This document shows, piece after piece, positions 43 through 59,555 of a DNA stretch of 64,000 nucleotides. The position numbers and the translations under genes are program-made. Source of the DNA: Macrostomum lignano (Eukaryota); assembly GCA_002269645.1 (NCBI GenBank), contig NIVC01000149.1, positions 248,001-312,000 on the forward strand, in the 5' to 3' direction. Within the stretch, counting starts at the first letter, position 1; each line of letters starts with the position of its first letter. The notes below the pieces were generated by a model. It was not told the DNA's origin. It saw only the letters and a list, made by a program, of their open reading frames with translations, and searched no databases.

Positions 43-2138
43 CTTCATTTGGCTCATTCAGAGGCTGCATCTCAACAGTCTTTCTATCGTCGCCTCCCGC
101 GCTGCCGCCGTTGCCGCCGACATGCGAGCCGGATCTTCGCTTCTGCATCAGCGAGCTGGCGTAGGCGCCAGGCCGCCGGCGCCTCTGACTTCTAGTCAGC
201 AGCTCCTCGGCTCGCCGAACTGGCGCCCTGTTCACCGACTCGCTGCTGATGCAGCCGCTAGAGAGGCAAACCACGGCGCCGGCGAAGGCCACCCGCTGGC
301 GGAAGGAGGCGACGCAGGCCAAGTAGACCCAGAAGCCGGCCGCAAAGCTGGCGTCCTGCACCGAGTCCAGCAGCTTGGTCAGCTGGGCCAGGTAGCGGCA
401 CCAGCAGCTGTCGCGCGGGTTGCAGACTCCGCAGTTGGCGCGCATCACTATGGCAACGCATAGCGGAGCGGCCAGCAGGCAGCTGGCCAGAGACAGGGCC
501 AGGTTGGCATAGTAACGGGACAGCTCGATGCGATGCGAGTCCTGTAGGCCGGAGCCCGGTGACGACGTCGGCGAGAGGAGCTCGCGGCGGCGACGGCGGG
601 CGCGGAGCAGCAGATAGAGCAGGGCAGCGCTGAGGGCCACCTGTGTGGCGACATGAGGAGCAGAAATTGATTTCACAGGTGATGTAGCAGACAGATACGA
701 TTGATTGATAAAGACACCTGTGATAAAGACACCTGGAATTTTCCAGGTGAAGCAGACAAATACGATTGATCGATAAAGACACCTGTGATAAAGACACCTG
801 GGATTTCCCATGTGAGGAGCAGACAGATACGATTGATCGATAAAGACACCTGTGATAAAGACACCTGGGATTTCCCATGTGAGGAGCAGACAGATACGAT
901 TGATCGATAAAGACACCTGTGATAAAGACACCTCGGATTTCCCATGTGAGGAGCAGACAGATACGATTGATCGATAAAGACACCTGTGATAAAGACACCT
1001 GGGATTTCCCAGGTGTAGCAGACAGATACGATTGATCGATAAAGACACCTGTGATAAAGACAACTGGGATTTCCCAGGTGATGTAGCAGACAGATACGAT
1101 CGATTGATAAAGACACCTGTGCACCTGGGATTTTCCAGGTGAGGAAGCAGACAGATACGATCGATCGATAAAGACACCTGTGCACCTGGGATTTTCCAGG
1201 TGATGGAGCAGACAGATACGATCGATGGATAAAGACACCTGTGCACCTGGATTTCCCAGGTGAGGAAGCAGACAGATACGATCGATGGATAAAGACACCT
1301 GTGCACCTGGACCTGGATTTTCCAGGTGATGAAACAGACAGATACGATCGATCGATAAAGACACCTGTGCACCTGGGATTTTCCAGGTGGGGAAGCCCAC
1401 GGACAATTTTCGGCATCTACATTAATATCTAGCAAGTAGGGGCCCTCTGACCTGCAGACCGAACGGGACCACAAAGATCCCAAAGCCTTTGTAGTAGATG
1501 GCAAAGTTGGCCAGCCTGTTCTCAGTTGTTGCATTGCAGGTCACGTGACAGGTGCGCCACAGGTGCAGCCCTGCCGACTGTCCCGCCGTTGATGCGCTGT
1601 CATTTTGTCGCGAGTGCCACTCCTCGGCGACATCGTAGACGACGGCAGCCGGCGCGTTGAGCGCCAGTCCGGCCACGCAGACGGCCAGCACGGCGCCGAC
1701 AGTTTCGCGGACGCAGCCGCGGGCGGCGAAGCGCAGCGGCCTCCAGACGCCCAGAAGCCTGTCGACAGTGAAGGCTAGAAGCAGATGGGCAGACACGAAT
1801 AGAAAGTAGTTCTGTAGGAACTCCAGCAGCTTGCAGCTGGCCACGCTGACCGTGTCAAGCTTCAGCACCGCCCGGCCGGTCGCGTGCATCAGTCCGCGAC
1901 CGAGGAAGTCGTCCAGCAGGCCGCTGACCAGCAGAACTCCGGCGTCTGACACGGCCAGCGCCGAGCAATAGATTCCGAATCTGTTCCAGCGGCTGAGCCG
2001 GGCTTCCAGCGTGAATATGATTAGCGTGGCTATGTTGCCAAGGATGCCAGTTACCACTATGATTGGCGTGAAGTAGGCGCGAGTGGCGCCCACAGCGAAG
2101 CGCAGGTCCGCCTCCAGTGGACAGGAACTATTAGACAT
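29..2138 (-). CDS. Orphan class-A (rhodopsin-like) GPCR, 2 exons, ~432 aa
   Basis: Exon 1 is 2138-1452 (ATG; ends CAG|gtcaga, phase 0). Exon 2 is 640-29 (cacag|GTG GCC ... TGA). Seven hydrophobic segments: TM1 'GILGNIATLIIF', TM2 'LAVSD', TM3 Cys plus 'FTVDRLLGVWRPL' (DRY-like), TM5 'FVVPFGLQVALS', TM6 'CLLAAP', TM7 'GFWVY'. Confidence 0.85.
670..1390. repeat. ~67-bp minisatellite filling the GPCR intron
   Basis: Unit gcagacagatacgattgatcgataaagacacctgtgataaagacacctgggatttcccatgtgagga, about 11 variant copies. Confidence 0.95.
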
Positions 2139-2859: not shown

Positions 2860-4067
2860 CATAGGCGTAGGAACGTTTCAAAATGTGGGGGGCAGGCGCA
2901 CGCCCCCCCCCCCCGTCGAGTTAGATTTTTTATTTTTTATATGAGAAATGCACATCATCATGTACCGATTCTAAAAATAATCGGTGTTGTCAGCTCAGCA
3001 CTCATTTTGGCGCCGCAGGCACTTGTTTTGGCGCCGCAGGCACTCGTTTTGGCGCCGCAGGCACTCGTTTTGGCGCCGCAGGTACTCATTTTGGCGCCGC
3101 AGGCACTCATTTTGGCGCCGCAGGCACTCATTTTAGCGCCGCAGGCACTCATTTTGGCGCCGCAGGCACTCATTTTGGCGCCGCAGGCACTCAGTTTGGC
3201 ACCGCAGGCACTCATTTTGGCGCTGCAGGCACTCATTTTGGCGCCGCAGGCACTCATTTTGGCGCCGCAGGCACTCATTTTGGCACCGCAGGCACTCATT
3301 TTGGCGCCGCAGGCACTCATTTTAACGCCGCAGGCACTCATTTTGGCGCCGCAGGCACTCATTTTGGCGCCGCAGGCACTCATTTTGGCGCCGCAGGCAC
3401 TCATTTTGGCGCCGCAGGCACTCATTTTAACGCCGCAGGCACTCATTTTGGCGCCGCAGGCACTCATTTTGGCGCCGCAGGCACTCATTTTGGCGCCGCA
3501 GGCACTCATTTTGGCGCCGCAGGCACTCATTTTGGCGCCGCAGACACTCATTTTGGCGCCGCAGGCACTCATTTTGGCGCCGCAGGCACTCATTTTGGCG
3601 CCGCAGGCACTCATTTTGGCGCTGCAGGCACTCATTTTGGCGCCGCAGGCACTCATTTTGGCGCCGCAGGCACTCATTTTGGCGCCGCAGGCACTCATTT
3701 TAACGCCGCAGGCACTCATTTTGGCGCCGCAGGCACTCATTTTGGCGCCGCAGCCACTCATTTTGGCGCCGCAGGCACTCATTTTGGCGCCGCAGGCACT
3801 CATTTTAACGCCGCAGGCACTCATTTTGGCGCCGCAGGCACTCATTTTGGCGCCGCAGGCACTCATTTTGGCGCCGCAGGCACTCATTTTGGCGCCGCAG
3901 GCACTCATTTTAACGCCGCAGGCGCTATGTTTTGTCATCCTGCAGCAAAATGCATTCATGCAAAGCAGAAAAAACCAGAAATAAGAGTAAAAAATAAGCA
4001 AAAGTCTACATTTTGCATTTAAAAAGCGGGGGCCATGCATGGCATCTCCCCCGTTTCTGCGCCTGTG
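2860..4067. mobile_element. Non-autonomous TIR element (MITE-like, possibly hAT) carrying a 21-bp satellite
   Basis: Left TIR cataggcgtaggaacg (2860-2875) matches the reverse complement of 4052-4067 (cacaggcgcagaaacg) at 13/16. Flanking direct repeat caacgat at 2852-2858 and 4069-4075. Confidence 0.75.
2995..3925. repeat. 21-bp minisatellite (caggcactcattttggcgccg), ~44 copies
   Basis: Highly homogeneous tandem array. It explains the ALILAPQ and ACGAKMS pseudo-ORFs. Confidence 0.97.
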
Positions 4068-4927: not shown

Positions 4928-7900
4928 TTACTCGCCCACTGTGATATTGCCGCCATAGATGGCCAGCAGGAGGATGGCGCCGAAGCCCGTGAACAGGCCC
5001 AGATTCTGCAACAGGAAGATCTTCGCCCGGCCAATTTGCTTTGCCTGAGGCTCCTCCATCGCGCTGTTCACTTCCGGCATCTGTGTTAGAAAAAATGTAT
5101 AATTTAAGCACGAAAATAAAAAATCATTTTTTTTACCAGAATCGCCAGAAAAGAAACGACCCATTCTGCTACTCGCAAAAAGGAAAACCGCAACCAGCAA
5201 AGAATTTCCTATTAGAGATTTATGATTCTATCAGATACCGTAAAGACGCGGCATTTCTCGGGTTGTGCCGCAATCCAATTGGCCTGGCACTCGCTAGCCC
5301 AATCCAATTATAGAGTCCTCACCGGAGGTGATGTACTCATCTAAAAATAACCCTTCCTTTTCGTACTTTCCAATTCGCTTTTTGGCCCTCGGCCTTGGTT
5401 CAGGGGGTGTACCTGGAGTGAGTGTGATCTCTGGACTGCAGTGTGACTAAAACGGGACTTGAGCCCCCCGGTCGCACCCGCCCTGCAGGAAAGAATGACC
5501 ATTCACAAAGGTGTACGGTAGAGCCCAGTAGCATGCCAGCCCTGAGGCTGAGCCCCGGGTTTAGGGTTCAGGTGCTCCTCCTAATGCTTTTATCCCTTTG
5601 TGCTTTTATTAATGTAAGGCCTAATGCCGCTCCAAAAATCCGGAGTTATGAGCTCTGCCCTCCCCGCCAGGTCCATCTTGCTCTCCTCGGTCCATCTGCT
5701 GGCTCCTCTGGAAGTTCCCTGCCCTTGTGTCTCGGCTCTCATCCTGACAGTGGATTGGAGTCCTGGGGTTGATGTTCGTCCCGAATCGGGGATACCGGCT
5801 GAGTCCGGGTCCTCTTGCCCCTTGTGCCCCTTCCCGACCCCTTGGCCTGGCCTCCAATATAGAGCTGGGAAGGTGACACCCTTGGGCTCGCAGCCCTATA
5901 GGTAGACGGTCTTCCTGCCTGATAGGAGACTCGCCCTCGGATACAAGCCTCCCAGACTCACTCCAAAATTAAGCCATTTCGTAGACTTCGGGGTTTCCCC
6001 GCTCTCGGACCGCTTTCAGTAGTATTTCAAACATTTTCCAATTCTTTTTTCGCGCACTACCGGGACTTGTCTGCTGGGTGGTGGCTTGGGTGGACTCGGT
6101 CTTAGCACCCTCCCTGATTCCACTTTTGGGTTGGCGGTGTCTTAGTTCATAGGTTTGGGTTAGTAGCTTCCCCTGGCCTCGTCGTCAGGGTCCAACCCGG
6201 GCTTGCTCGGGCTATATGCCCCTGGTAGATGTTCCCCCCCCCACAGCGGCAGAGCCCCTCTCAGGGCTGATCAGCGGGTTGCCCCCGGCTTCCCACCCCG
6301 TTTAACAACAACAATTTCCTATAAGAGATTTTCAAACAATCCCAACCTGTCAAAGAATCCTCACATGTCAAATAATCCAAACTTGTCAGAGATCCCAACC
6401 TGTTAGAGATCCCAACCTGTCAAAGAATCCTCACATGTCAAATAATCCAAACTTGTCAGAGATCCCAACCTGTTAGAGATCCCAACCTGTCAGAAATCCC
6501 AACCTGTCAGAGATCCCAACCTGCCTGACATCCCAACTTGTCAGAGATCCCAACCTGTTAGAGATCCCAACCTGTCAGAAACCCCAACCTGTCAGAGATT
6601 TCAACCTGCCTGACATCCCAACCTGTCAGAGATCCCAATCTGTTAGAGATCCCAACCTGCCTGACCCAACCTGCCTGACAGAGATCCCAATCTATCCAAT
6701 GATCCCTACCTGTCGGACACCAGAACCCGTCAGAGATCCCAACGCAGCTCACCATGTCCACCAGGCTGATGTACAAGAACATGCCGCTGGCGACGGCGAA
6801 GATCCACACGCTGGCGCCGGTCTCTCCCAGCCAGACGCCCAGCGCAAAGCCCAGGTAGCAGGTGCAGGCGGACAAGAAGTTGCACAGCAGCGCCATCGGC
6901 ATAGACATCCCGGCTGACAGCAGGATGGCGAAGTCGCCGAGCTCGTGCGGCAGCTCCTCGCACAGCACCGCCAGGCAGATGCTGACGCCGCTCAGAGTCG
7001 ACCGGGTGAAGGCCGCCCCGATGCTCAGGCCGTCGATGAAGTTGTGCAGCGCGTCGCCGAGCAGAATCATCCAGGCCACCGGCTGCACCTTTGCCAGCCA
7101 GGTGGACACGTCCCTGTTGCTATTAACCATGTCGGTCTGGCTGTAGCAGGCGTCGCCGTTTTCGATTGCTTCTATCGGCAGCACGATGGCAGCTCCGTTC
7201 GCCGCGAGCTCCCCAGTCGGCGAGGAAGGCGCTTTGCTTCTATCCTGATCGGCCGACTCTTGTGGAGTGAAGCAAATCTCGGCCGTTTTGAAGTTGGCCA
7301 GGCTGGACGAGTCACCGGTGGGTGCCGCCGCTGGCAGTGAGTGCGAGCGCCCATGCCCGATGCCGCCGCTCTGCTCGGGTTTTTGAACGTTGAGGAACTC
7401 CATGGTATCTATGATTTCTGTGGTGCACGAACTATGCTATGTGTTGCATGTGAGCATGATTTGTAAGGAGCTGGTTCAACGCTTTGGACAACATCGTCCC
7501 ACGCCTGGTGAGGCAATCCTGGTACCCACTCCATCGCCTCGCTCCGCCGCCAGCCCAGAACCGCTGCAACGCGTACTTAGGCACGTACGAGCTGCTTCTT
7601 TAAACTCATCAACTGTGCTTTCGGGGTAGCCTTTGTGGACGTTATCGAAATTCAAAAAGTTCCTGCATGGACTTCAAAAACAATACGTACCTTCTTTCTG
7701 ATGAGCTCCTTAAGCATTCTTTCAATGATGAAGAACATGTAGATACCACCAAACACCGCGCAACAGCGCCACAAGTACCACGGATGCTGCGAGAGGAAAT
7801 CCTTCCATGCTGTGTGCCCAGAATTCTCAGCGTGAAACAGATGGAGCTGACGGTCGTCATCGATTAGGCTGGAGTTTGCTTTGTTTACTTCCTCGTGCAT

Positions 7901-9836
7901 GAAAGCCAGCTGCAGGCACTGCGGATGTTGAAATTAGCGTGAGAGAATCGTCTTGAGACGTATCAAAAAATGCGAGGGAAGAGGATGCAATACACAGGAC
8001 AACAGCAGGAAAAATACTAAAGTCTAATAAGGAATCAGCATCTCTCTGTGCGTTGGTCTCTGAATTGAAAAGCTGACCCGACACAGGCATTCATCTCATC
8101 GCCATTCCCATCCAAGGCTCAGTGCCACAGAATTGCGTCGTCATGTTTAACTAGAGAAAAAGTAAAAAAGTAAAAACGCTCACGGAATTTTCTTCATTCA
8201 AAGTGCCTTAAGTAACTTGACAAACATTTCATTATTTTTTATTTGAACAGTCTCCCCCGACACTGAAACAATGTGAAGCTACAGTCAGGCTCAAGCAATT
8301 CAAGCTAACGTCTTACCGAAAAGTGAGTTTTTTTAGAGACAAAATCTCTCCAAGTATTGTGACAGGAAAATTCGCCGCTATCATAATGAAAGCTGTGTTT
8401 ACTCTGGGCATTCAATTTGGAGACAATGCTAAATTCCTTATTCATAGTGGGAGCCTTGAGTCTATTGACTCTTCTTACCTGGGCCAATATTGTATAGTCT
8501 GAGAGATGCAAGTTTATAAAAATGGATTCAGAAATATTCAACGTACTTGGCCCTTTCAATGCAACAGAACGGTTCGAACGGCAGATGGAAACTGGAAAAC
8601 TGAAAAACTTTGTGACACGATAGAGATGATGCAATACAACAGTATCTTTCTTGCGAAACAGTTGGTGCGCTAAATTCAGCATAGATTGGAACTAACCACT
8701 TTCATTCAATATTTTTTGAACCCCTGCCACCTTTAAGAACACGGAACTGTTTTCCCGCCGGTGCATATAGCATGCAGAATCTGTTGGCTATTATTTTATC
8801 CCTGTCTTGAAGTGGCTCAATCACAGAAGCTGAATAAACGAGTCAAAGATACCTTGGCGTTGTGACAATTAAGGGTGTCAAAGTTAAGGTGAATACTACG
8901 CACAACAGATACTTCAGTTGCGACCTCCGCAGTTTATGGAGCTTCAAAAATCAGAAATTAACATTTTTTTCTCATACTAACGCCACTGTAATCCACTTTT
9001 GCACTTTTTACAACAAGCGGCAAAATCCACTACAGATTTTTAATTTTTAACAGGCAGCGCTGCATAAATGGATGCTGCATAGTCTCGATCTTCACCAGAA
9101 TCTTCATCAAATAAATCTCTCCTACCAGCATTCTATACACATCCGGCCTCCATCCCCGATTTCCATTTGCAACTCACATCCGGCAGCAGGATGAGCAGGG
9201 CGGTGGCCACGAGAGATCCCACAGCCAGGGAGACCATGAACGTCATGAGCAATTTGAAGAACCGCCGGCCCATGAAGGGCAGGAAGATGATGCCCAGAAC
9301 TGCGCAGAGGTTGATGAGCGTCACAAACAGCAGGCCGTAGCCCCACACTGTGGGTGGTTTGATGAATTTGCTTGTTGATTGGCTTGTGGTTGACTGAGTA
9401 ATGCACTATTCACCATCAATTACCGTGTAATGGATTCTGAGCAGTGTGGCCGCCCCCGTGCTCACTATTGTCAGCTGCCACCAGCTGTTGAATATAGCAG
9501 TCCGGAGTTTGAACTCCGCCTAGCAGAGTTGACACCAGGTGAGTGGCGTTGTCCCGCGTCCAGGTGAGGGACTCAATGCTCTGAGACTGGCTGGGACACT
9601 GCACTCGTCAGTGACATGGGAAAAGTTTGCACGAATGATCTTAAGTCTCACCTCACTCATTTTTTCTAATCATTTACCTCCATGACCGACGTTACTCTAC
9701 TGAGCAAATTGGAGTTCATGCTGATTGACGCCAGAAATTCAGTCACATTATGGCCATATACAATGCCATTGCGGCCGTAGAGGCTGATAAACTGTCCTGC
9801 CAGGGTCGAGATAGACTCGCCGGAATCGACCGCTGC
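4928..9836 (-). CDS. ZIP (SLC39A) metal transporter, LIV-1 subfamily, ZIP8/ZIP14-like, copy A
   Basis: Exons: ~9836/9832-9678 ([13 protein letters not shown]), 9598-9424, 9347-9178 ([15 protein letters not shown]), 7909-7691, ~7417-6753 ([21 protein letters not shown]), 5080-4928 (stop). The first exon and the loop exon(s) in 7418-7690 are unresolved. Confidence 0.9.
5222..6312 (+). mobile_element. ~1.09-kb retroposon-like insertion with an (AAC)n tail in the last intron of ZIP copy A
   Basis: Flanked by aatttcctat(t/a)agagattt at 5203-5221 and 6313-6331 (18/19 match). Ends ...ccccgtttaacaacaac. No recognisable RT ORF. Confidence 0.7.
6335..6740. repeat. 17-bp minisatellite (agagatcccaacctgtc family) in ZIP A intron; same family as 19620-20420 in ZIP B
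   Basis: Reverse complement of the ggttgggatctctgaca unit in the equivalent intron of copy B. Confidence 0.9.
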
Positions 9837-11639
9837 CTGAGAGTTTTGTACAGTGGATACTTAAAGTATCAAGGCCAGTTTAAAGCAGTGTATTATTTTT
9901 CGAGTGTATTCACAATTAAAGTTCGAAACCACGTCCAAAAATTAAATACATGTAAGCATGTAAGTATAATTCTGTTGCATGCTATTATCGATCCCGTACA
10001 GCAATCCGACGTCGGTGACGTCGCTAGACGCTCCCGACGTCTACGAAAAATATGTACTTTTAAATTACATCGACGGTGTAGCGTGTGACGTCGTTATCCG
10101 CCGATGTAATCTAAAAGTTACTTTTTTGACGTTGGATTGCTGCAGGCGGGTATGCTATACTAGATTAAGTGATTATACGTAGTTGCTTTCTTCGTGACAA
10201 GTCTTTCAATAACTTATTGCATTTCATTCGAAAATTCACAGCATTCATACATTAAATTGAGAGCTTTTTACTTATTAAGGGACTTGATTTAGTTTACAAA
10301 CAAATTACACGTTTTAGAAAGTTTATCCATGACGCCATACTTGGCAAACATTAATGTACGTGTGTGTACACATCTTTAAGCCAAGGCCATTGCAGGAGTA
10401 TGCTTCGCCTAGGTTGAATTAGAAGCATGTTATTTAATGATCTTACCATTTCTGAAGTTAGATACACTGAACGTATAATTCGCAAGGTAAATTAGAGTAT
10501 ATTCCAATGAGGGAACAATAAATTTGAAATTTGGGTTTGTTTTATTTCGAAGCACTAAAATTTAATGAAACAAAGGAATTTAATCTTAAAGACATCGAAC
10601 GAAGTTAGTGATAGTAAAATATATTTTTAGACGCTCTATTTCAAATTCTTGCAGTATATGCATTCAAGAAAAAACGATCATTGTTCCTCAAAAACGTACA
10701 CGTAGCTACATGACGCAACAGTGTATGTACAATATTAAAACTGTAACTTTGCACTGTCGGCTATTATTTATTGCTAGTAATTTAGAGACCTTAATTTATT
10801 TCCAGTAGGAAGGAAATTAGAAGGTAATGCTACTGGTTATGAAGTTTAATGATAGACTATACAAAATGCATGCTGTATATTTTCACCTTCGTCCTTCAAG
10901 GTCAAAGTAAACTTGTGGTTTAATCTTTTACAGAATAAATTTTAACACATGTAATCAATACTGTAACGCGAAAGCTAAAGAAATATGAAAAAAACAAAAA
11001 ATCGGTTAAAAAGTGACGTCTGTATTTTGTTTTAATATTTCATATGCGTCCACCACATTCAACGGCGAATTTAATTTGTAAGTAAGAACGTAAACATTAT
11101 TATTAAGTAAACATATTATTCGTGTTTTTCGTATTTATTCAGATTACAATATTTGTTGGTATTAATATTACTGACTGAAATCATACTGTTGCTTCCTGCA
11201 TTAGTTGAATTGAATGTTTTTAGTATAGAAGAGTAGCTCCAGCAGTAATAGTTTAAAGAGGCACTTCACTCAGCACATCACGCTACGCCCACGTGGTGTA
11301 GACCTAGGCGTGGGTGTGTCACTGCGTGTGGAGTATCATACTTGTATAAGTACAAGACAATCAGATAAATGGTATGGGCTTAACTAGGGTAAAATCATTA
11401 AAATTATATAAATTTAGGAGTGACGAAAGGGATAATGGTTAGGCCTATTCCAGCAAACATGACTTTTATTTTAAAAAATCATGATGAAATCATAAAATTC
11501 AACTGCACCACATTAAATTAGCTTTTTTTATGCTCCTTGTTTAAACAATTTTTCTTTGCAATGTTAATTCCATTTTTAAAAGGAATAAAATCAAAAAACA
11601 TAATTTATTTATCAACATATTGCATTACCAATGCCCTAT

Positions 11640-11860
11640 CTACATTTACTGGTCTTATGCTCAAATTTAATGCAATTTGCCCATGCCAATGGAAGGCTAG
11701 TCTCGTCTGCTGCATGATGCACAGAGCATTCAATATCTATAGTACCTGGCAATCTTTCTACCCAGAAGTGGTTAATCTTATTAACATTTTTCAATGGAAT
11801 GATTTCCCTAAGGGTTTTGATAGTAAAGTGCTAAACAGATTTCTAATTAGGAAAATGACC
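11640..11860 (+). mobile_element. Degenerate Penelope-like element remnant (post-RT thumb/linker region)
   Basis: Translation STFTGLMLKFNAICPCQWKASLVCCMMHRAFNIYSTWQSFYPEVVNLINIFQWNDFPKGFDSKVLNRFL fits the recalled PLE pattern T.TG....F.S..P...K..L+..L+HRA..I.S....F..E+..L..IF..N.YP..F+...+..FL. Confidence 0.7.
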
Positions 11861-11969
11861 TCCACTGAGTCTAGTTTGGTAGGTTATTTAGGTAAATCTA
11901 GTTTTTTAGTTTATTCAGCTCAAGTAAATCTAGTTTACAGTTTAGTTTTCTAGGTTTAATGTTGGTATC

Positions 11970-11985
11970 TTTCTCTCTCTCTCTC

Positions 11986-12021
<36 letters not shown>

Positions 12022-12026
12022 ACTCT
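11970..12026. repeat. (CT)n microsatellite
   Basis: Direct reading of 11970-12026. Confidence 0.95.
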
Positions 12027-13182
12027 CTGCCAATATTGTTCTATATGAAAGCCTAGTAATTTAATTTATTTTTGTCCATTAATGTACAATTATTGACTAG
12101 ACTGAACCCATTCATCTATTGCCCTATATAGTTTTTGATTTGTTTTATTTAAATATATGGAATTGTGGACCATGTATATAAGCCCTAAAGATAACCACTT
12201 GTGTCAAAATGCCTTGGCTATAAATTTACTTGTATGTTGGTGTTAAACTTCATTTTTTATTACTTAATAAATGAGCATTGTTACCAGATATATTGTTATC
12301 TTTCCTTAGATAATATTGATGGTAGTGGTCATTTAAAAGCTATGGCTATTATAACATTAATACTCAATAAAAGCTTATAGCAATATATAATTAAAGTTTT
12401 ATATTGATAGGGTTTAATAGTTTTTATCTTAAAAAAATATTAGACCTTGTCCATATTTTGGTGCCTTTCCTTAAATTTTATAATAGGTCATAGCCTCTTA
12501 GCCAGACTCCGGATGGTATACATATACGCCGGAAAATTCCGGCGTACAGAGGGACCTAGATTACACATTGGCGTACAACTTGGCGTACAAAGGCGCCTGG
12601 CGTGCCCTCTTGGCGTACAGCTTGGCCAAGACCAGCAGGTGGGACCAAAAGTTCCGAGTCCCAACAATCAATCTACATAATTAGCATACAAAAATGATTA
12701 AGTTTGCATTTGGCATAGTTTCCATGTACATAGTTACAGTAGCTAAATTTTGATCAGAAAGAATGGCTGGCCCTTTACGAAAAAAACGGAAAACTAAATT
12801 TAAAAAACCGGGCTTAACCTTTCCAAGAAAGTAAAAGTAAAACAAAATTAGTTAAAATGAACTAGTTCTCTACAGTTTAGTAAAAAGATTTTCAGTTTTA
12901 ACACATAGGTTGATCAAATATTAAAATTTTGCAAGCTTTTAATATTAGTTGTAGTTTGTAATTTCTATTTTGGCGTATTTTTGTATGCGATAAAAAGTTC
13001 GTTGGCGTACATTGGCGTGCATGAGCTACGGAAGCAATTTTCGTTCCGGCGTACAGCGGTACACGATCCTGACCCTGGCCTCTTAGGATATGGCAAATGT
13101 TATAAAACAATAAAAATATTAGACAATATTATTGCTTGATATTATATTTATTAGTACTTTTTACTTCTAATCGATAGATAAG

Positions 13183-16100
13183 ATGGTTTTGTCATTAAAT
13201 AGAGTTTATTTAGCATTATTATTATTATACATTTATGGTTTATATAATTTATTAGACATTATTTTCATTTTTATGAAATGGTCATAATCTGTTTAGGCCT
13301 ATTATATAGTGATAAATCATAAAAGATAAAAATATGTATATTTCTTAAATTTATGTTTCCTTTAAATGAAACTAATACACCTATATTAAATTGAAATAAT
13401 TTCAGATTCAACAATTATGAATTTTGAAAATTCAACTATAGCTCTAGCTAATAAATTCATAGAAATCTATGGCTACAATGGAACTGTCTATGGAAAGAAT
13501 ATTACTGACTTTCTGTCTGGAATCACAATGAGCACTACTATGCTTAGTCGGCTATCAATACAAGAACAGGTAAGAACTGAAATAATGAGTATATATGCCA
13601 ATAAATTTAATTTTTCATTAGTGCAAAAGGTATAGAAAATTTTAGTGATGAAATTTGCTATAAATGTAATTCTTCCAAAATATGATTTAATTTAAAGTTT
13701 TAAATAGTTAGTTACACTTGTATAGCCAGACTATCGCCATCTACTCTACCCTCTCTACCCTCCCACAGTGTCCTGTCCAAGTGGACAGTCTTCGGCTGCT
13801 GCAATGGACTGAGGCCAATGCCAGCAGTCTGATCTCTACTGTGCTGGGTGGCGTTCAAACTCCTGCCTGCTATTCCAGGGCTTCATCAGCTGCTGCCGAG
13901 TTTGCAGCCGCCTCTGCCACAGCTGCAGCGCATGACAGGGAAACAAATCCCCTTCATGGTAATCTCTGACGCCAAAAATCTCTCTTTATAGTCAATATAT
14001 TTTTGGATCTCAAGTCCACAATTTACGATCCCAAAACCTCTACTCGCTGATCGAAATCCGAAAATTTGAATTGCCATTGTGATGAAGCTTAAATAATCAT
14101 TGATCCTAAAAATCCTTGATCTTTATGAAGCTTCTAGAGTCCCTGATCCATCAAAAATCCGCCAACTTGATGAAGCTTTAACAATTCCCAAATCGTCGAA
14201 AATCCCCCATATTGATGAAGCTTCTAGAATCCTTTATTCCCAAAAAAATCCCCCATATTGATGAAGCTTCCAGAATCCTCTATTCCCAAAAATCCCCACC
14301 ATTGATGAAGCTTTTGAAGAGTTCGCTTTTTCACACTAGAGAGAGGGAAAGAGAGAGAAAGAGAAGAGAGAGAGAGAGAATTATGTATAGTGTCTAAACG
14401 CTCGAACTCCCACTTCCAGACCCTAAGCCTGGGAACAAAATTTAGTTATCACTTACTGTTGCGGGCTCCTCTTCTTTGTTGGGCAGGTTCTCCGAGCTCG
14501 TTTCTTCGATTTCTCTTCTTTGTCGCGCGCGTCTGTAGAGCTTGTCTTCGCAGATCTGTTCCTCCCGGGGTGGTCTTCTTGAAGTGTAGAATCGGCCGAA
14601 AGTGAGAGTGTAACAATTAAATCGACGTCGCAGTATTTTCTCTAGTGCAGAATCAATATATTCCTCGAGTGCCGAAATTAATATATTCCTCGAGTGCAGA
14701 AATCAATATATTCCTCGAGTGCAGAAATCAATATATTCCTCGAGTGCAGAAATCAATATATTCCTCGAGTGCAGAAATCAATATATTCCTCGAGTGCAGA
14801 AATCAATATATTCCTCGAGTGCCGAAATCAATATATTCCTCGAGTGCAGAAATCAATATATTCCTCGAGTGCAGAAATCAATATATTCCTCGAGTGCAGA
14901 AATCAATATATTCCTCGAGTGCAGAATTCAATATATTCCTCGAGTGCAGAAATCAATATATTCCTCGAGTGCCGAAATCAATATCAAAGATGCGACCTAA
15001 TAACAAAATCAACTTCTATAACAATACGAGGTCCTCCAGAAAGGGCGTCTTCTTCTAGAACTAACGGAATCGGAGTCGTGTGCTCCTATCGGTTAATCTA
15101 GGATAATCCAAAATCAATCACTCGATAATCCTCTAAGGGTATCGGAATCGGTCCGCAGATCCTATCCAAGCCCTTAGGAAAATGGGAGGCCTCAAATTCA
15201 ATGAACTCAGCCAAATCAGCTGATCAGTAACGGCCGGCAATAAAATCGCTCTCAATAATCCAAATAACAAAGGCTCGAACACGGCTTACCGAACGGTATT
15301 GATTCCCTCAGAGATGTAGCCTCGCTTAGCTGCTCCAGCAAGCTTTGAGATCTTTGGTGGCTGCTCCGAGTCTGGGATTTCAGCTCGGATTTTGATTTGT
15401 ATTTATAGGCAAGTTTTCATTATATCAATAGTAACGTGATTCATTTTTCATCATAAGTTTTACGATAAATCATCTTTCATCATAAGTCGCAACATGATTC
15501 ATATTTCATAAGTCGTAAATGATTAATCTTTTATCAAAGTTTTGCTACCCATGTTTACGTTAGTCTACTTACAGTAGCTTTTTATGAATAATGGTGCTCT
15601 ACACTTCCAGAATCCTCTATTCTCAAAATTTCCCCATACTGATGAAGGTTCCAGGATCCTTTATTCCGAAAAAAATCCCCCATATTCACGAAGCTTCCAG
15701 ACTCCTTTATTCCCATCTTGGTGACGCTTCAGGAATCACCGATCCCCAAAATCTTTCCATCCTGCTAAAATTCTGCATTACTTAACAACCAAGTGCCGTA
15801 GAATCATCCACCATATTTATGAAGCCTTAAATCCCTGTGGTCTTTTATTATCATACCGATATTAATATTCATGAAATCGTTTGCTACGCGATGCCACACC
15901 CGCAGTGTGGGGCTACGGCCTGCTGTTTGTCACGCTCATCAACCTCTGCGCAGTGCTGGGCATCATCTTCCTGCCCTTCATGGGCCGGCAGTTCTACAAA
16001 CTACTCATGACGTTCATGGTGTCTCTGGCTGTGGGATCTCTCGTGGCCACCTCCCTGCTCATCCTGCTGCCGGATGTGAGTTAGGGATATTGGGCTGGGA

Positions 16101-19100
16101 TGAAGGGAGATGGGGAAGAGAAGACTGGGCTGAAGGGGAGATGAGGAAGAGGAGACTGGGCTGAGGGGGAGATGGGGAAGAGGAGACTGGGCTGAAGGTG
16201 AGATGAGGAAGAGGAGACTGGGCTGAGGGGGAGATGGGGAAGAGAAGACTGGGCTGAAGGGGAGATGGGGAAGAGGAGACTGGGCTGAGGGGGAGATGGG
16301 GAAGAGGAGACTGGGCTGAGGGGGAGATAGGGAAGTGCAGACTGGGCTGAGGGGGAGATGGGGAAGAGGAGACTGGGCTGAAGGTGAGATGAGGAAGAGG
16401 AGACTGGGCTGAGGGGGAGATGGGGAAGAGGAGACTGGGCTGAAGGTGAGATGAGGAAGAGGAGACTGGGCTGAGGGGGAAATGGGGAAGAGGAGACTGG
16501 GCTGAAGGTGAGATGAGGAAGAGGAGACTGGGCTGAGGGGGAGATGGGGAAGAGGAGACTGGGCAGAAGGGGAGATGAGAAAGAGGAGACTGGGCTGAGG
16601 GGGAGATGGGGAAGAGCAGACTGGGCTGAGGGGGAGATGGGGAAGAGGAGACTGGGCTGAAGGTGAGATGAGGAAGAGGAGACTGGGCTGAGGGGGAGAT
16701 GGGGAAGAGGAGACTGGGCAGAAGGGGAGATGAGAAAGAGGAGACTGGGCTGAGGGGGAGATGGGGAAGAGCAGACTGGGCTGAGGGGGAGATGGGGAAG
16801 AGGAGACTGGGCTGAAGGGGAGATGGGGAAGAGGAGACTGGGCTGAAGGGGAGATGGGGAAGAGGAGACTGGGCTGAAGGGGAGATGGGGAAGAGGAGAC
16901 TGGGCTGAAGGGGAGATGGGGAAGAGGAGACTGGGCTGAAGGGGAGATGGGGAAGAGGAGACTGGGCTGAGGGAAGATGGTTATTAAATGGGGTCAGGAC
17001 TAAAAAGTCTCATAAGTCTAAGGAGACAGCGAGAGGATGATAAATATGACAATGAAAATCCAGCTGCAACTTTAATCAGCCATGCTCACCCACCTGATGC
17101 ACTGCAGTCTCTTCAGTTGGCCTTCATCCACGAGGAAGTGAACTTTGCCAACTTCAGCCTGGTGGAAGAGCACCACCACCACCTGTTCCGGGCAGAGCGG
17201 CCCAGCCACGCCACCTGGGAGGATTTTCACTCTCAGCATCCCTGGTACCTGTGGCGCTGTTGCGTGGTGTTCTTGGGTATCTACCTGTTCTTCTTGATTG
17301 AGCGGCTGCTCAAAGAGCTCATCAGGTGGAAGGTGAGGGCTAAGGAGGGAATTTATTCCCCTTGCAGGTACCCACTGACCCTCACTGTGGATATCAGATC
17401 TCTGAGTATATCAGATCTCTGATGATATATGATTAGATCCCTAAGTGTATCAGATCCCTGAGTGTATCAGATCCCTGAGTGTATCAGATCCCTGAGGATG
17501 TATCAGATCCCTGAGTGTATCAGATCCCTGAGGATGTATCAGATCCCTGAGTGTATCAGATCCCTGAGGATGTATCAGATCCCTGAGTGTATCAGATCCC
17601 TGAATATATCAGATCCCTGAGGATGTATCAGATCCCTGAGTGTATCAGATCCCTGAGGATGTATCAGATCCCTGAGTGTATCAGATCCCTGAATATATCA
17701 GATCCCTGAGGATGTATCAGATCCCTGAGTGTATCAGATCCCTGAGGATGTATCAGATCCCTGAGTGTATCAGATCCCTGAGGATGTATCAGATCCCTGA
17801 GTGTATCAGATCCCTGAGGATGTATCAGATCCCTGAGTGTATCAGATCCCTGAGTATGTATCAGGTCCCTGAGGATGTATCAGGTCCTTCAGTATGTATT
17901 TTTTAAACCAAATAATTACTTACTATATTTATAAAAGTATGCACTTTTTCAATACTGATTTAGCCGGCAATATGCAACTGTTAACCAAGCCATTAAGCGA
18001 TTATCAACCACTTGTATCAAGCCTCTATAATTATTTGTTGATATTCAATCGAACCTTAGCAACCGGTTGCCACGGCCGCCACTGGCGCAGCTGCCGCCGC
18101 CTCCGCAAAGCATCAGCACAGTCACCAGCAGTCCAGGGAGCGACTCCCGTCCTGCAGCATGAACATCGAGCGGAAGCCGACTCGCTCTGACAAGCAGATT
18201 CGATACGCCAGGCCCGACGGCAGCCGCGGCTGCGCGCGCTGCGGCAACGACGACTTCGACAACGCCTTCGCCGAGGAGTCGACGCCGAAGCTGGTTCTGG
18301 AAGTCGAGGCGGCGATGCTGCCTAAGACGGTTTGTGTCTCCGAGTTGTTTGAATGAGCGGCTGTTTTGGTTTCTGAGGCTGCGGGGATCCTGATCTCCCC
18401 TGGCTGTGGGATCTTGGGAGTCATAGGCTGGGATTTTGAGATTCATAGGCTAGGATCTTGGGAGTCATAGGCTGGGATTTTGAGATTCATAGGCTGGGAT
18501 CTTGGGAGTCATAGGCTGGGATTTTGAGATTCATAGGCTGGGATCTTGGGAGTCATAGGCTGGGATTTTGAGATTCATAGGCTGGGATCTTGGGAGTCAT
18601 AGGCTGGGATTTTGAGATTCATAGGCTGGGATCTTGGGAGTCAGAGGTTTTAATTTTGGGAGTCATAGACTGGGATCTTGGGAGTCATAAGCTGGGATCT
18701 CGGGAGTCATAGGCTGGTATTGCGGGAATCATAGGCTGGGATTTCGGGAATCATAAGCTGGGATTTTTAGAGTCGTAGGTTCGGATTTTGTTACACGTAG
18801 TCATAGGCTGGGATCTTGGGACTTGATATCACCACTATCTTTTCCCATTTGTACACTTTGCAACTGGAACCATTTTTGCTCAATAAAAACTGATTAATAA
18901 ATTACAGATTCATAAATACAGCAAAGCAAAATGCAGGTAACAATATGCTCATACTATATTTATAACGGACAGTTTAGTAATTTTCTGCTTTCGCGTCCTA
19001 CTTCCCGCTCTGCTTATTCTAACGGACCATTTTCTAAGAAACCCTACCTACGCCCGCCGTCCAGGGCGGCCAGGTCGGCAGTTCGCAGCCGGACACGGTG

Positions 19101-20720
19101 GCTCCCTCGAGCGCCGCGGCGTCAGGTGACCACAGCGTCAGCCTGGCGACAAACTGCAGCGCCAAGGCTCGCCCGGCCGACGCCGCCACCGCCGCAGTTG
19201 CCGATGAAAAGAAGCTGACAAGGAACGGCGGCCTCTGCGACGACCGCGACGGCGTGTCAACCCGGCTGGCGAAGGTGCAGCCGGTGGCCTGGATGATTCT
19301 GCTCGGCGACGCGCTGCACAACTTCATCGACGGCCTGAGCATCGGGGCGGCCTTCACCCGGTCGACTCTGAGCGGCGTCAGCATCTGCCTGGCGGTGCTG
19401 TGCGAGGAGCTGCCGCACGAGCTCGGCGACTTCGCCATCCTGCTGTCAGCCGGGATGTCCATGCCGATGGCGCTGCTGTGCAACTTCTTGTCCGCCTGCA
19501 CCTGCTACCTGGGCTTTGCGCTGGGCGTCTGGCTGGGAGAGACCGGCGCCAGCGTGTGGATCTTCGCCGTCGCCAGCGGCATGTTCTTGTACATCAGCCT
19601 GGTGGACATGGTGAGCTGCGTTGGGATCTCTGACGGGTTCTGGTGTCCGACAGGTAGGGATCATTGGATAGATTGGGATCTCTGTCAGGCAGGTTGGGTC
19701 AGGCAGGTTGGGATCTCTGACAGGTTTGGATCTCTTACAGGTTGGGATCTCTAACGGTTTGGGATCTCTGACAGGTTGGGATCTCTAACGGTTTGGGATC
19801 TCTAACGGTTTGGGATCTCTGACAGGTTGGGATCTCTGACGGTTTGGGATCTCTGACGGTTTGGGATCTCTAAAAGGTTGGGATCTCTAACAGGTTGGGA
19901 TCTCTGACGGTTGGGATCTTTAACAGGTTGGGATCTCCGACAGGTTGGGATCTCTAACAGGTTGGGATCTCCGACAGGTTAGGATCTCTAAAAGGTTGGG
20001 ATCTCTAACAGGTTGGGATCTCTAACAGGTTGGGATCTCTGACGGTTTGGGATCTCTGACAGGTTGGGATCTCTAACGGTTTGGGATCTCTGACAGGTTG
20101 GGATCTCTAACGGTTTGGGATCTCTAACGGTTTGGGATCTCTGACAGGTTGGGATCTCTGACGGTTTGGGATCTCTGACGGTTTGGGATCTCTGACGGTT
20201 TGGGATCTCTAAAAGGTTGGGATCTCTAACAGGTTGGGATCTCTGACGGTTGGGATCTTTAACAGGTTGGGATCTCCGACAGGTTAGGATCTCTAACAGG
20301 TTGGGATCTCTAACGGTTTGGGATCTCTAACGGTTTGGGATCTCTGACAGGTTGGGATCTCCGACAGGTTGGGATCTCCGACAGGTTGGGATCTCTGACA
20401 GGTTGGGATCTCCGACTCTTGGGTATTATGGGGAAGGTTTGGATTCTCTGACAGGTTCAGGTTGGGATTATTTTACAGGGTAGGATGTTGGGTCAGATCG
20501 CAGCCATAACTTGGCATGGACTCTGAGAGTGAATCGCGAATTCCCTCGCCCCATTTCCCTCCAGATGCCGGAGGTCAGCTACTCGATGGAGGAGCCTGGG
20601 GCCAAGCAGCTGGGCAAGGCGAAGATCTTCCTGCTGCAGAATGTCGGCCTGTTCGCCGGCTTCGGCGCAGTGCTGACGCTGGCCATCTACGGCGGCAACA
20701 TTCAGCTTGGCGGAGAGTGA
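13183..20720 (+). CDS. ZIP (SLC39A) metal transporter, LIV-1 subfamily, ZIP8/ZIP14-like, copy B, ~588 aa
   Basis: Phase-compatible exons: 13183-13237 (signal-peptide-like [18 protein letters not shown]; tentative), 13406-13569, 13769-13958, 15906-16075, 17117-17332, 18060-18329, 19065(or 19089)-19610, 20565-20720 (TGA). Motifs [10 protein letters not shown] and [11 protein letters not shown]. Confidence 0.93.
14338..15600. mobile_element. Unclassified ~1.26-kb insertion interrupting an older AT-rich repeat in a ZIP B intron
   Basis: The same gatgaagcttccagaatcctttattcccaaaaatcccc units lie on both sides (14030-14320 and 15601-15780). Possible acact direct repeat at 14333-14337 and 15601-15605. 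Starts with a GA-rich tract and contains a 25-bp array. Boundaries are ambiguous. Confidence 0.5.
14640..14985. repeat. 25-bp minisatellite (gcagaaatcaatatattcctcgagt), ~14 copies
   Basis: Direct tandem array with one CTCGAG per unit. Confidence 0.95.
16095..16975. repeat. 31-bp purine-rich minisatellite (gggctgagggggagatggggaagaggagact), ~28 copies
   Basis: Tandem array starting about 20 nt after the 16075 donor. Confidence 0.95.
17390..17890. repeat. Alternating 17/19-bp minisatellite (tcagatccctgagtgta / tcagatccctgaggatgta), 36-bp higher-order unit
   Basis: Direct reading. It gives the [12 protein letters not shown] pseudo-ORF. Confidence 0.93.
18395..18825. repeat. 22-bp minisatellite (gtcataggctgggatcttggga / ttcataggctgggattttgaga)
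   Basis: Tandem array in a ZIP B intron. Confidence 0.9.
19620..20420. repeat. 17-bp minisatellite (ggttgggatctctgaca)
   Basis: Fills the last intron of ZIP B. Confidence 0.95.
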
Positions 20721-20864
20721 CGGAGGGCCGCCCTGTTCAGTCCTGACTGTGTGGGCAGCTGAAGCTGGAGGCGTTGTTCTTGATCATCGGGCCAGTTTTG
20801 CTCCAAGTTAAATACATAGGCGCGAATTTCGCTTCCTTTGAGCTGTATTGAATGGAGTTTGGCC

Positions 20865-21185
20865 ATAGAAAGATTCTGTCGAGACAGATTTGGCCATAGA
20901 CAGATTTGGCCATAGACAGATTCGGTCGAGACAGATTTGGCCATAGAAAGATTCGGTTGAGACAGATTTGGCCATAGACAGATTTGGCCATAGACAGATT
21001 CGGTTGAGACAGATTAGGCCATAGACAGATTCGGCCATAGACAGATTTGGCCATAGACAGATTTGGTCGAGACAGATTTGGCCATAGACAGATTCGGTTG
21101 AGACACATTTGGCCATTGACATTTGGCCATAGACAGATTTGGCCAGAGACAGATTCGGTGAGACAGATTTCGCCATAGACAGATC
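20865..21185. repeat. ~15-16-bp minisatellite (agacagatttggccat / agacagattcggtcg)
   Basis: Tandem array just 3' of ZIP B. Confidence 0.9.
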
Positions 21186-21794
21186 GGCGCGCTAGAAAAA
21201 GTACATTAAAGGGACAGGAACAACAAAAAATTTCACCAATGAATTTTGCAGCGAAATTGTAGCAGCCTTCCGCTTCAACTGCCCGCCTGAAGGTGTCGGT
21301 TGGCATCTGTGTTTTAGCAGTGGAAGCTATTTTTAACTAGAATGGAATTCTTTTTTAAGGGTTTTATTGTCATACTGTTTTGCATCATTTTTGCATGAAA
21401 ATATCCGCGTGTTGTCAGCAGTAACTTTGCTAATTGCAAATTTTTTTATTGAAGTCTTCAGCCGGCATTCGAAGTCATTGCTGATAGTCGATAAACACCT
21501 GGATTTATGATTTATTCCAAACTTTGCGCTAATGCGGCTGGTTTGCTTGATGAAACAATTTTTTTCTTTTTTTCCTATTGATAAGCTTGTATGTGGCCTG
21601 CAATTCTGTTGAAGTTCTGTCATTTTATGTTTTTTCTCTTGTCGCCTTTTAAATTTTTGTGTAGCTAGCAGCTGCTTCTGGAGGTTTTTTTATTGATCCT
21701 CTTGAATTGATTTGATTTTGCAATATTTCTCTGGTTTATGAATTGTACTTATGGCTTCATTGTCTCCAGCTTTTATGGGATGCTTGAATTTTAA

Positions 21795-22135
21795 CCATAA
21801 CCCTAGCCCTAGCCATAGCCCTAGCCATAGCCTTAGCCCTAACCCTAGCCATAGCCCTAGCCCTAACCCTAGCCCTAGCCATAGCCCTATCCCTAGCCCT
21901 AGCCCTAGCCATAACCCTAGCCGTAGCCATAGCCATAGCCATAACCCTAGACATAGCCCTAGTCATAACCCTAGACATAACCCTAGTCATAGCCCTAGAC
22001 ATAACCCTAGCCCTAGACATAACCCTAGCCCTAGCTATAACCCTAGCCATAGCCATAACCTTAGCCATAGCCATAACCCTAGCCATAGCCCTAGCCCTAG
22101 CCCTAGCCAAAACTTTAGCCCTAGCCATAGCCCAA
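21795..22135. repeat. Degenerate hexamer array (ccctag/ccatag/ccataa), telomere-like
   Basis: A 6-nt register is kept over ~340 bp; ccctaa occurs rarely. Confidence 0.85.
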
Positions 22136-24881: not shown

Positions 24882-45822
<20,941 letters not shown>

Positions 45823-53468: not shown

Positions 53469-54308
53469 CAGGGGTATCGCCATAGATTTTATGATGGGGG
53501 ACAAAGCCAAGAATTATACATGACTAAATTCCTACATTATTTCGGGAATTGGTGCCGTTAGCACTCATTTTGGCGCCGCAGGCACTCATTTTAGCGCTGC
53601 AGGCACTTAATTCAGCGCCACAAGCACACATTTTGGCGCCGCAGACAGGCACTCATTTTGGCACCACAGACAGACACTCATTTGGCGCTGCAGACTCGAC
53701 AGTCATATGGCGCCACAGAAAGACACTCATTTGGTTCCGCAGACTTGACAGTCATATGGCGCCACAGACAGACACTCATTTGGCGCCGCAGACTCGACAG
53801 TCATATGGCGCCACAGACAGACACTCATTTGGCGCCGCAGACTCGACAGTCATATGGCGCCACAGACAGACACTCATTTGGCGCTGCAGACTCGACAGTC
53901 ATATGGCGCCACAGACAGACACTCATTTGGCGCCGCAGACTCGACAGTCATATGGCGCCACAGACAGACACTCATTTAGCGCCGCAGACAAATATTTTGG
54001 CGCCGCAGACTCGACAGTCATATGGCGCCACAGACAGACACTCATTTAGCGCCGCAGACAAATATTTTGGCGCCGCAGACTCGACAGTCATATGGCGCCA
54101 CAGACAGACACTCATTTGGTTCCGCAGACAAATATTTTGGCGCTGCAGACTCGACAATGATTTGGCGCCGAAAGCGCTTTATTTTAGCGCCCTGTTGCAA
54201 AATTATTGTTTTCATAACGGGTCACCAGGTAGGGGGTGGGGAAAAAATAGCTTTTACTGGGTGGACATGCCCCTCCACCCTGTCCCAACCCCGGTGGCGA
54301 CGCAACTG
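53469..54308. mobile_element. Non-autonomous hAT-like MITE with an internal satellite related to 2995-3925
   Basis: Perfect 8-bp direct repeat cctcagct at 53461-53468 and 54309-54316. CAG...CTG termini with imperfect TIRs (10/14). Internal gcactcattttggcgccgcag-derived array with a ~51-bp higher-order unit. Confidence 0.82.
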
Positions 54309-58106: not shown

Positions 58107-59555
58107 GGCAGTGCTTATTTAGCCGGCACCGGCCAAATAAGTTTGCTACTATTTAGCTGGCAGTCCTGCCCCATTGCCGGTCAAATAAGCTCGTCACTAT
58201 TTAGCTGGCAGTCTTGCCCCATTGCCGATCAAATAAGCTCGTCACTATTTAGCCGGCAGTCCTGCCCTACTGCCAGTCAAATAAGCTTGTCACTATTTAG
58301 CCGGCAATCCTAGCCCCCAATGGCCACGCCATTATATATATGGCAATGCTTATCCTCACGGTACCATAGGAATAATTTTTGTCTTATTCCACCTATACCA
58401 TGGGGATAATTTTCTGCTTATCCGCACGGCACATAGACGAGATAGCTGCCCCATCTTCTACATATGCCGTGGGAATAATTTTCTGCTTATCCGCACGGCA
58501 CATAGACGAGATAGCTGCCCCATCTTCTACATATGCCATGGGAATAATTTTCTGCTTATCCGCACGGGTGAATTGTTGAAGCAATGCAATAATCTATACA
58601 AACAAATTGAGAACTTACATGTCTAGTAAGAAGTCTACAGAAGCAGCAGCAATGGACTTTTCGGGGATATTGGGATTAGACTAGTTGCTAAAAGTTTTTA
58701 AATTGTAAACAATTACTAGAGCAATTCATCTTAAATCATACGTCATAAATACAAAAAAGTGTTTTTTTGCGTAAAAAGGCCATTAAATCTTTACTTCTAT
58801 AAAAATAATGGCCAAGCAAAGTTATGTTGTTATACTGCACTCAAACTGTAAGTACTAAACTAAATTATGAACCCACGGCATATGTAGAAGATGGGGCAGC
58901 TATCTCGTCTATGTGCCGTGCGGATAAGCAGAAAATTATCCCCACGGTACCGTTGGAATAAGACAAAAATTATTCCTACGGTACTGTGGGGATAAGCACT
59001 GCCTTAATTTATTCAAGATATTTAAACTTTGGGCAATACAAAGTAGGTATAGCAAATATAAATCAATGCAGATTCAGTACAATTTATTACTTGCCTTCAA
59101 GTTTGTTTAATTGTTTCAATGTTTCTGGAAGTCTTGCATATTTCGGAAATTATTTGTACACAATTGTAGCAGCAGAAGAGTGAAGACACACAAACAAATT
59201 AAAAATTAATCATGCATGTTTTACTTTCACTTTAATCTCTAAATCAAAAACACTCATTAAAGCCAAAAAACCACTGCAAACACCTTTATTGAAAAACTCC
59301 AAAATTGTAGTATAAATAATTAGCTCGTAGTATGTTAAATTATTAATTTAAGGTCATGATGAGCAGTGCGCAGTTATAAAATGTATTTTGACCAGCGTGG
59401 CCATTGGGGGCCAGGATTGCCGGCTAAATAGTGATGAGCTTATTTGACCAGCAGTGGGGCAGGACTGCTGGCTAAATAGTGACAAGCTTATTTGACCAGT
59501 GCCAGCTAAATAGTAGCGAACTTATTTAACCGGTGCCGGCTAAATAAGCACTGCC
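58107..59555. mobile_element. Mutator-type non-autonomous foldback element with nested inner inverted repeats
   Basis: 9-bp TSD atatgaatt at 58098-58106 and 59556-59564. Long TIRs ggcagtgcttatttagccgg... (58107-58330 vs 59395-59555). Inner IR pair at 58342-58570 and 58870-59003. Confidence 0.85.

Follow-up and report, generated by a model that had tools for sequence, protein, structure and literature searches.

How do two old and strongly diverged genes, lying in opposite orientation on one chromosome, come to share a stretch of almost perfect DNA identity that covers the membrane core of their proteins and runs on into an intron? The question arises at a locus of Macrostomum lignano (assembly Mlig_3_7, contig NIVC01000149.1), of which we analysed a window of 64 kb. 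The window holds two genes for ZIP8/14-like transporters of the SLC39 LIV-1 type, gene A (4928–9836, minus strand) and gene B (13406–20720, plus strand). A first-pass annotation had pointed out a 447-bp inverted identity between them and attributed it to recent ectopic gene conversion. We conclude that non-allelic (interlocus) gene conversion between ancient head-to-head paralogs on one chromosome is very probably the correct explanation. It accounts for silent and intronic identity with sharp bounds, for flanks whose silent sites are saturated or nearly so, for conflicting trees and for the presence of the tract in three copies of the locus.

The identity itself was reproduced by direct comparison: the reverse complement of 6645–7091 matches 19272–19718 at 446 of 447 positions, and the near-identity of the two arms is confirmed as real in the assembly. 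The sole mismatch, C at 19460 against T at 6903 on the gene strand, is synonymous as described (TCC and TCT, both Ser). The tract comprises 339 coding nt, which encode transmembrane segments (TM) 4 to 7, and the first 108 nt of the last intron. In gene A (minus strand) the arm divides into coding positions 6753–7091 and intron positions 6645–6752, and in gene B (plus strand) into coding positions 19272–19610 and intron positions 19611–19718, with the exon ending at 19610 (GAC ATG/GTGAGC). A repeat search returned a longer, ungapped inverted pair of 656 nt, 6455–7110 and 19253–19908, at 95% identity and with arms ~12.1 kb apart. On the 5' side of the tract, 19 nt of B (19253–19271, plus strand) align with A 7092–7110 with three mismatches, and upstream of 19253, where the same exon encodes the cytoplasmic loop, no nucleotide similarity between A and B can be aligned. 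On the 3' side, the mismatch map shows dense mismatches from 19719, occurring every few bases in the ungapped register, so that the tract ends inside a 17-bp satellite common to both introns, as had been noted. The block of near-identity is sharply bounded and set between paralogs that are otherwise strongly diverged.

Both gene models were built by tblastn, of P0003 and P0128 for A and of P0121 for B, together with splice sites read from the sequence. Gene A has six recognisable exons on the minus strand (9836–9678, 9598–9424, 9347–9178, 7918–7691, 7436–6753 and 5080–4928), the fifth of which encodes loop and core undivided; the first listed exon has no start codon, and the 5' end of A is provisional. 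Gene B (PAA89550.1, BOX15_Mlig024403g1) has seven coding exons on the plus strand (13406–13569, 13769–13958, 15906–16075, 17108–17332, 18060–18329, 19065–19610 and 20565–20720), with its ATG at 13417 in the first of them, and matches P0121 exactly by tblastn except at exon junctions, where adjoining matches overlap. The genes are divergently transcribed, and an AT-rich stretch of ~3.6 kb separates their first recognisable exons. The interval between the tract arms (7092–19271, 12,180 bp, no strand) contains the 5' parts of both genes and this AT-rich intergenic region.

By sequence, A and B are predicted metal transporters of the LIV-1 subfamily of SLC39 and resemble ZIP8 and ZIP14. Their matches to Pfam Zip (PF02535) score 207.8 bits for B (E = 3.2e-61) and 207.2 bits for A (E = 4.9e-61), with a cutoff of 35.1. 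LIV-1 proteins carry the motifs HNFxDG in TM4 and (H/E)EXPHEXGD in TM5, with E in the first position in ZIP8 and ZIP14; HNFIDG and a TM5 motif of the EEXPHEXGD type can be read directly in both A and B. With the concatenated exons of B as query, a search of protein sequences returned M. lignano proteins at 100%, followed at ~40% by proteins of molluscs, nemerteans and other animals named 'metal cation symporter ZIP14-like/ZIP8-like', and returned none from Macrostomum species besides M. lignano. A crude Kyte-Doolittle scan gave three peaks before the loop, a TM4–TM7 block at residues 409–521, which are the residues encoded by the tract, and one peak in the last exon, a layout that fits the eight-TM ZIP topology with a long, variable TM3–TM4 loop. 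The TM assignment rests on motifs and hydropathy, because a PDB sequence search with gene B found nothing at E <= 1e-5. Within the TM3–TM4 loop, gene B also has an extra intron (18330–19064) following its exon 18060–18329, and ~60 residues more than A and a further paralog, C, described below.

Outside the tract and exon 3, the silent sites of these old paralogs are saturated or nearly so. Synonymous divergence (dS) between A and B by the Nei-Gojobori method is 1.43 in exons 1–2, 1.29 in exon 4, 1.21 in the loop and 0.59 in the last exon, as against 0.139 in exon 3 and 0.012 in the tract core; the comparison of dS by region that the first-pass annotation had proposed as a check therefore sets 0.012 against 1.2–1.4 in exons 1–2, exon 4 and the loop. 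Taken together, exons 1–2, 3 and 4, the loop and the last exon contain 383 differences between A and B in 1083 aligned coding nt. The contrasts first described between the tract and the rest of the genes also hold, in that the last exons are 76% identical over 50 residues, exon 3 (TM1–2) differs at 9 of ~170 nt, and the N-terminal exons align as protein only, at 50–56%. Apart from the start of the last intron, none of the introns of A and B align with each other. A second proposed check, of the GENECONV type, gave a corresponding result: in a Sawyer-type longest-run permutation test, for which we used our own implementation and not GENECONV itself, the longest concordant run between A and B extended over 51 polymorphic sites, while the permutation maximum was 25 and 0 of 10,000 permutations reached the observed value.

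We then asked how much of this identity selection could supply. If purifying selection and codon bias alone kept the metal-binding core identical, no transfer of DNA would be needed, and two properties of the core lend themselves to that idea. Among the four ZIP8/14-like paralogs of M. lignano that we compared, namely A, B, C (BOX15_Mlig017980g1, on another contig) and D (BOX15_Mlig029158), no segment of the protein is better conserved than the core, in which A and B are 92.9% identical to C and 80.5% identical to D; moreover, a GC content at third codon positions (GC3) of 0.95–0.96 lowers the count of possible silent differences. We therefore applied a test that takes codon bias into account, in which identical codons at sites encoding the same residue are compared with independent draws from each gene's own usage. 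For A and B, 103 of 104 same-residue codons in the core are identical, where the core's own codon usage predicts 71.7 (z = 7.3), and exon 3 has 45 identical codons against 30.4 expected (z = 4.5). An excess was also found in the core for B and C (84 observed, 65.3 expected, z = 4.5) and for A and C (83 observed, 65.0 expected, z = 4.4). The core of D, under equal protein constraint, stays near random expectation (z = 1.0–1.2), and the other exons and pairs show no excess silent identity (z = −1.1 to 0.7). Identity furthermore reaches 108 nt into the intron, a region in which C is unrelated. As the first-pass annotation had argued, protein selection is insufficient for the silent and intronic identity, and as the sole cause we consider it exceedingly improbable. 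GC3, which falls to 0.84–0.86 in the other converted exon and to 0.39–0.63 in exons 1–2, is high in the converted exons in a way compatible with GC-biased conversion; the link stays a mere correlation because D, with no significant silent excess, also peaks in the core (0.75).

Comparison with C shows that the relationships of the paralogs change along the genes. Outside the converted exons, A is nearer to the unlinked C than to B: amino-acid identity in the loop is 44% for A and C, 22% for A and B and 24% for B and C, and the corresponding values in exons 1–2 are 61%, 51% and 52%. A and C also have in common an undivided loop-plus-core exon, which B splits by its extra intron. In the 339 nt of the core, A and B are without a fixed difference, C is 23–24 nt away and D is 76–77 nt away. 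The trees of tract and flank are therefore in conflict, and the switch from an A/C to an A/B grouping indicates a transfer of DNA between A and B, since protein selection cannot produce it.

Whether the identity might have been made by the assembly can be judged from further copies of the locus. M. lignano is a neopolyploid with three subgenomes, S, L1 and L2 (PMC10733133), and the whole A/B locus is present in Mlig_3_7 in three copies, the window itself (L003), L001 (NIVC01000604) and L004 (NIVC01002133), which fits a correspondence with these subgenomes. L003, the locus retrieved for PAA89550.1, agreed with the window at 100% in all probes compared. All six genes (three of A and three of B) carry the tract, and no fixed difference between A and B and no subgenome-specific difference was found in it. 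What changes there are in the tract are private to single copies: the TCT single-nucleotide polymorphism (SNP) in A1, one intronic SNP in A3, and in B2 a CTA SNP and a 14-bp deletion in the intronic satellite. An assembly or polishing artefact would require that the copies truly differ at silent and intronic sites and that read correction, collapse or Pilon made them alike. Mlig_3_7 was assembled with Canu from PacBio reads and polished by Pilon with Illumina and RNA-seq data (PMC5730564), and with six tract copies in the assembly short reads must multi-map. However, a single contig contains both arms, each bordered by unique flanks, and the same pattern recurs in three different contigs; the persistence of private SNPs and a 14-bp indel in individual copies shows that any such homogenisation was incomplete. 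Polishing with RNA-seq reads does not explain 108 identical intronic bases, and polishing acts only on copies that are already near-identical and cannot make identity out of ~35% divergence. Three separately assembled copies with only private changes thus argue against a collapse, and we rate an artefact as very unlikely.

The same copies bear on timing and extent. Since no difference is fixed among them, the last homogenisation should be about as recent as the split of the subgenomes, or later. Gene-wide silent divergence between subgenome copies, given as the proportion of synonymous differences (pS), is 0.014–0.043 for A, ~0.0095 for B and 0.042–0.054 for C. The ends of the tract vary between copies: A3 has the base of B at 19263 and at five positions in 19719–19749 that distinguish A1 and A2 from B. 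As far as the fetched DNA allows them to be compared, the three copies are collinear, and no inversion of the 12.2-kb interval was seen. Aligned to L001 and L004, window positions 13400–21800 show a mosaic of identity among the subgenome copies; between the window and L004, exons 1–2, the core exon and the downstream region of gene B are 100% identical and exon 5 only 95%. Together with the low divergence of B, this mosaic suggests that sequence has been exchanged between homeologous copies too.

A second block of excess silent identity lies in exon 3, at 15906–16075 in B (plus strand) and 9178–9347 in A (minus strand). In its first 84 nt A and B are the same apart from private changes, and five fixed differences cluster in mid-exon. 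In its 3' part, the A3 copy (L004 4203–4386) is in the B state at three sites at which A1, A2 and the outgroup C agree. The B state of A3, with C siding with A1 and A2, shows a B-to-A conversion that occurred in one subgenome copy only, so that this patch has a direction and is polymorphic among the subgenomes. On its pattern of silent identity, exon 3 evidently carries an older, patchy conversion tract.

A comparable signal connects A and B with C. The core exon of C (L002 14789–15153, with subgenome copies at L006 7230–7568 and L007 7121–7459) has 92–93% nucleotide identity to A and B and a dS of 0.19–0.21, and in the central 126 nt (TM5–TM6) only two differences are found, both silent. Outside the core exon C has no nucleotide match to A or B, and its intron contains an unrelated satellite. 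On this distribution, the unlinked C is likely to have exchanged core-exon sequence with A/B in an older event. No second ZIP gene was found beside C or D within the fetched flanks. The conversion originally proposed stands, but it was not an isolated single event, given the signals in exon 3, in the core of C and at the variable tract ends.

The satellite at the 3' end deserves separate attention, since it had been proposed to promote pairing. The unit GTTGGGATCTCTGACAG is common to the last introns of both genes, as claimed, with ~47 copies in B (19620–20416, plus strand) and ~23.5 copies in A (6339–6743, minus strand), and the intronic part of the tract is the degenerate start of this array. 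The 17-bp satellite was found nowhere else in the 64-kb window, nor in the C and D loci. We also considered that it belongs to a dispersed family that landed in both introns by chance, and rejected this given the lack of copies elsewhere in the window and in the C and D loci. As A and B share no other intron sequence, the satellite was most likely carried over by conversion and then expanded independently in each gene; it is more likely, on this comparison of introns, to be part of the transferred DNA than a pre-existing shared aid to pairing.

Both genes have further repeats in their introns. The last intron of A includes a GC-rich segment of ~1.1 kb, between 5204–5222 and 6313–6331, to which nothing in the last intron of B is similar. 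An imperfect direct repeat of 19 bp, AATTTCCTAT[T/A]AGAGATTT, borders the segment on both sides, and the segment may represent an insertion with its target-site duplication. Neither the rest of the window nor the C and D loci contain another copy; its counterparts are 99.9% identical in L001 and 98% in the covered part of L004. Successive introns of gene B (17392–17899, 18407–18821 and 19620–20416) contain three different minisatellites with units of 36, 22/44 and 17 bp, respectively, and each unit has as its core GGGATCT or a sequence that differs from it by one base. Minisatellites are dense throughout the window, with 70 rows of Tandem Repeats Finder (TRF) output, which fits the reported genomic content of 15% simple and tandem repeats.

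A satellite at one end of a sharply bounded block might also point to a different kind of event, namely a one-off replicative or template-switch replacement, similar to microhomology-mediated break-induced replication (MMBIR) or fork stalling and template switching (FoSTeS), or a recent partial duplication that overwrote the old exon. A block with sharp ends would look alike if it had been pasted in a single event, and satellites are a type of sequence that may stall replication. The replacement is, however, perfectly in register, neither end shows a junction scar, an insertion or a duplication, and the 5' end coincides with the limit of homology. Several independent patches, in exon 3, at the edges of A3 and in the core of C, are moreover typical of recurrent homologous conversion. 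We accordingly give such a single replacement very little probability, about as little as an assembly artefact.

Some points nevertheless weigh against interlocus conversion as we describe it, or limit its detail. Pilon polishing with short reads and RNA-seq could have erased a few true differences (PMC5730564), so that the real identity may be slightly below 446 of 447. ML2 and Mlig_3_7, the two public assemblies, were built on the same PacBio reads, and exact look-ups of two open reading frames (ORFs) that run from the loop through the tract into the intron, aimed at independent Illumina/Logan assemblies, gave nothing. Very few sites underlie the observation that the subgenome copies diverge less in the tract than A does at silent sites across the gene. 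Finally, comparison with the outgroup C does not show which gene donated the main tract, since A and B agree at every coding site and C has an unrelated intron.

Under interlocus conversion, the following course of events would explain the locus. One copy would have suffered a double-strand break in or close to its core exon or intronic satellite, followed by strand invasion into the inverted paralog ~12 kb away, on the same chromatid or its sister, and by a repair that was resolved without crossover. This repair would have overwritten at least 447 bp, from the sequence encoding TM4–TM7 into the beginning of the last intron, where the 17-bp satellite lies. On its 5' side the tract would have come to end within 19 nt of the limit of homology, at the junction between the unconstrained loop and TM4, and the 3' end would have been blurred inside a fast-changing satellite array. 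The process is recurrent, with an older tract in exon 3, additional B-state patches in A3, for which B was the donor, and an older exchange in the core of C; the timing would fall near or after the split of the subgenomes. As a perfect 447-bp repeat is a better substrate for further exchange, the state should reinforce itself. Were a crossover to fall within the tract, the 12.2-kb interval would be inverted and the two genes would trade their last exons in frame. The phrase 'homogenising the transport site', used in the first-pass annotation, describes the outcome only, and selection for that outcome is no part of our conclusion.

A more far-reaching version of this model may be entertained, although we think it unlikely. 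In it, the ZIP core exon would be a standing hot spot of conversion and not the site of one accident; the adjoining intronic minisatellite would seed conversion, conversion would be GC-biased and B would be the preferred donor; in all three subgenomes of this neopolyploid the hot spot would connect three ancient paralogs, A, B and the unlinked C; and the transport core, possibly including the dimer interface, would evolve as a unit while the N-terminal part and the loop diverge freely.

Beyond the two ZIP genes, the window contains other genes and repeats. An exon at 24885–26123 (minus strand) encodes part of a voltage-gated cation channel, with Pfam matches to Ion_trans (5e-35) and GPHH above their cutoffs and a match to the SCN5A-like C-terminal IQ motif below its own cutoff, and an exon at 1425–2138 (minus strand) encodes a rhodopsin-family G-protein-coupled receptor (7tm_1, 2e-10). 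A 19-bp satellite (GCAACACCCACCTCACTCC or its reverse complement) forms inverted arrays at 28434–28883 and 32604–33051, which are ~3.7 kb apart and 84% similar and sit between the minus-strand ORFs 24885–26123, of the ion channel, and 32540–33463, which has no Pfam match. A 21-bp satellite with the unit GCACTCATTTTGGCGCCGCAG forms two arrays in direct orientation, at 2998–3923 and 53549–54170, ~50 kb apart. Positions 58229–58481 and 58862–59495 constitute an inverted repeat pair, ~92% identical with arms of 100–140 nt, amid tandem repeats of 34–69 bp, and may represent a foldback or terminal-inverted-repeat element.

These results have consequences for the study of the two genes and of the genome. 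As A and B have the same transport core, functional differences between them are to be sought in the N-terminal domain, the cytoplasmic loop, TM8 or regulation. Paralog trees drawn from conserved exons can mislead, because the relationships of A, B and C flip between exons. For genome work on M. lignano, it matters that subgenome copies can differ in their state of conversion and that a near-perfect inverted repeat of 447 bp is a potential substrate for a 12-kb inversion. A literature search found no relevant report on gene conversion in M. lignano, and for the wider field the locus adds one more fairly clean case of ancient paralogs whose concerted evolution is exon-limited.

The A/B case is one of classical interlocus gene conversion, a known process with a new example, and its closest relatives differ from it in instructive ways. 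At the human fetal globin genes HBG1/HBG2, Slightom, Blechl and Smithies reportedly described in 1980 a tract that ends at an intronic simple repeat, proposed as a recombination hot spot. A and B resemble this pair in having a tract over exons and part of an intron, with one end at an intronic repeat and flanks that are far more diverged; the globins, however, are young tandem direct duplicates with (TG)n, whereas A and B are inverted and ancient and have a 17-bp minisatellite. The ampliconic palindromes of the human Y chromosome undergo conversion from arm to arm and have arms identical over tens to hundreds of kb. Conversion within a chromosome between inverted copies is common to both systems, but A and B do not qualify as a palindrome by near-identity along whole long arms, being homogenised over only 447 bp and a patchy 170-bp exon of a gene of ~5–7 kb. 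The blood-group genes RHD and RHCE are likewise oppositely oriented, at a distance of a few tens of kb, and conversion moves segments the size of an exon between them (PMC4824203); they are tail-to-tail, young and highly similar over their full length, whereas A and B are head-to-head and only two of their exons are similar enough for exchange. In the inverted heat-shock pairs (hsp16 and hsp70 of C. elegans, Hsp70 87A/87C of Drosophila), adjacent inverted paralogs are homogenised as well, by tracts that are largely confined to the coding region and sometimes reach introns (PMC3966223). There, the whole ORF is homogenised and selection for dosage has been invoked, whereas in A and B only the membrane core exons are homogenised and the N-terminal domain and loop have diverged. 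What distinguishes A and B among these systems is the age of the paralogs, the restriction of exchange to membrane-core exons, the involvement of an unlinked third paralog and the presence of subgenome copies in different states.

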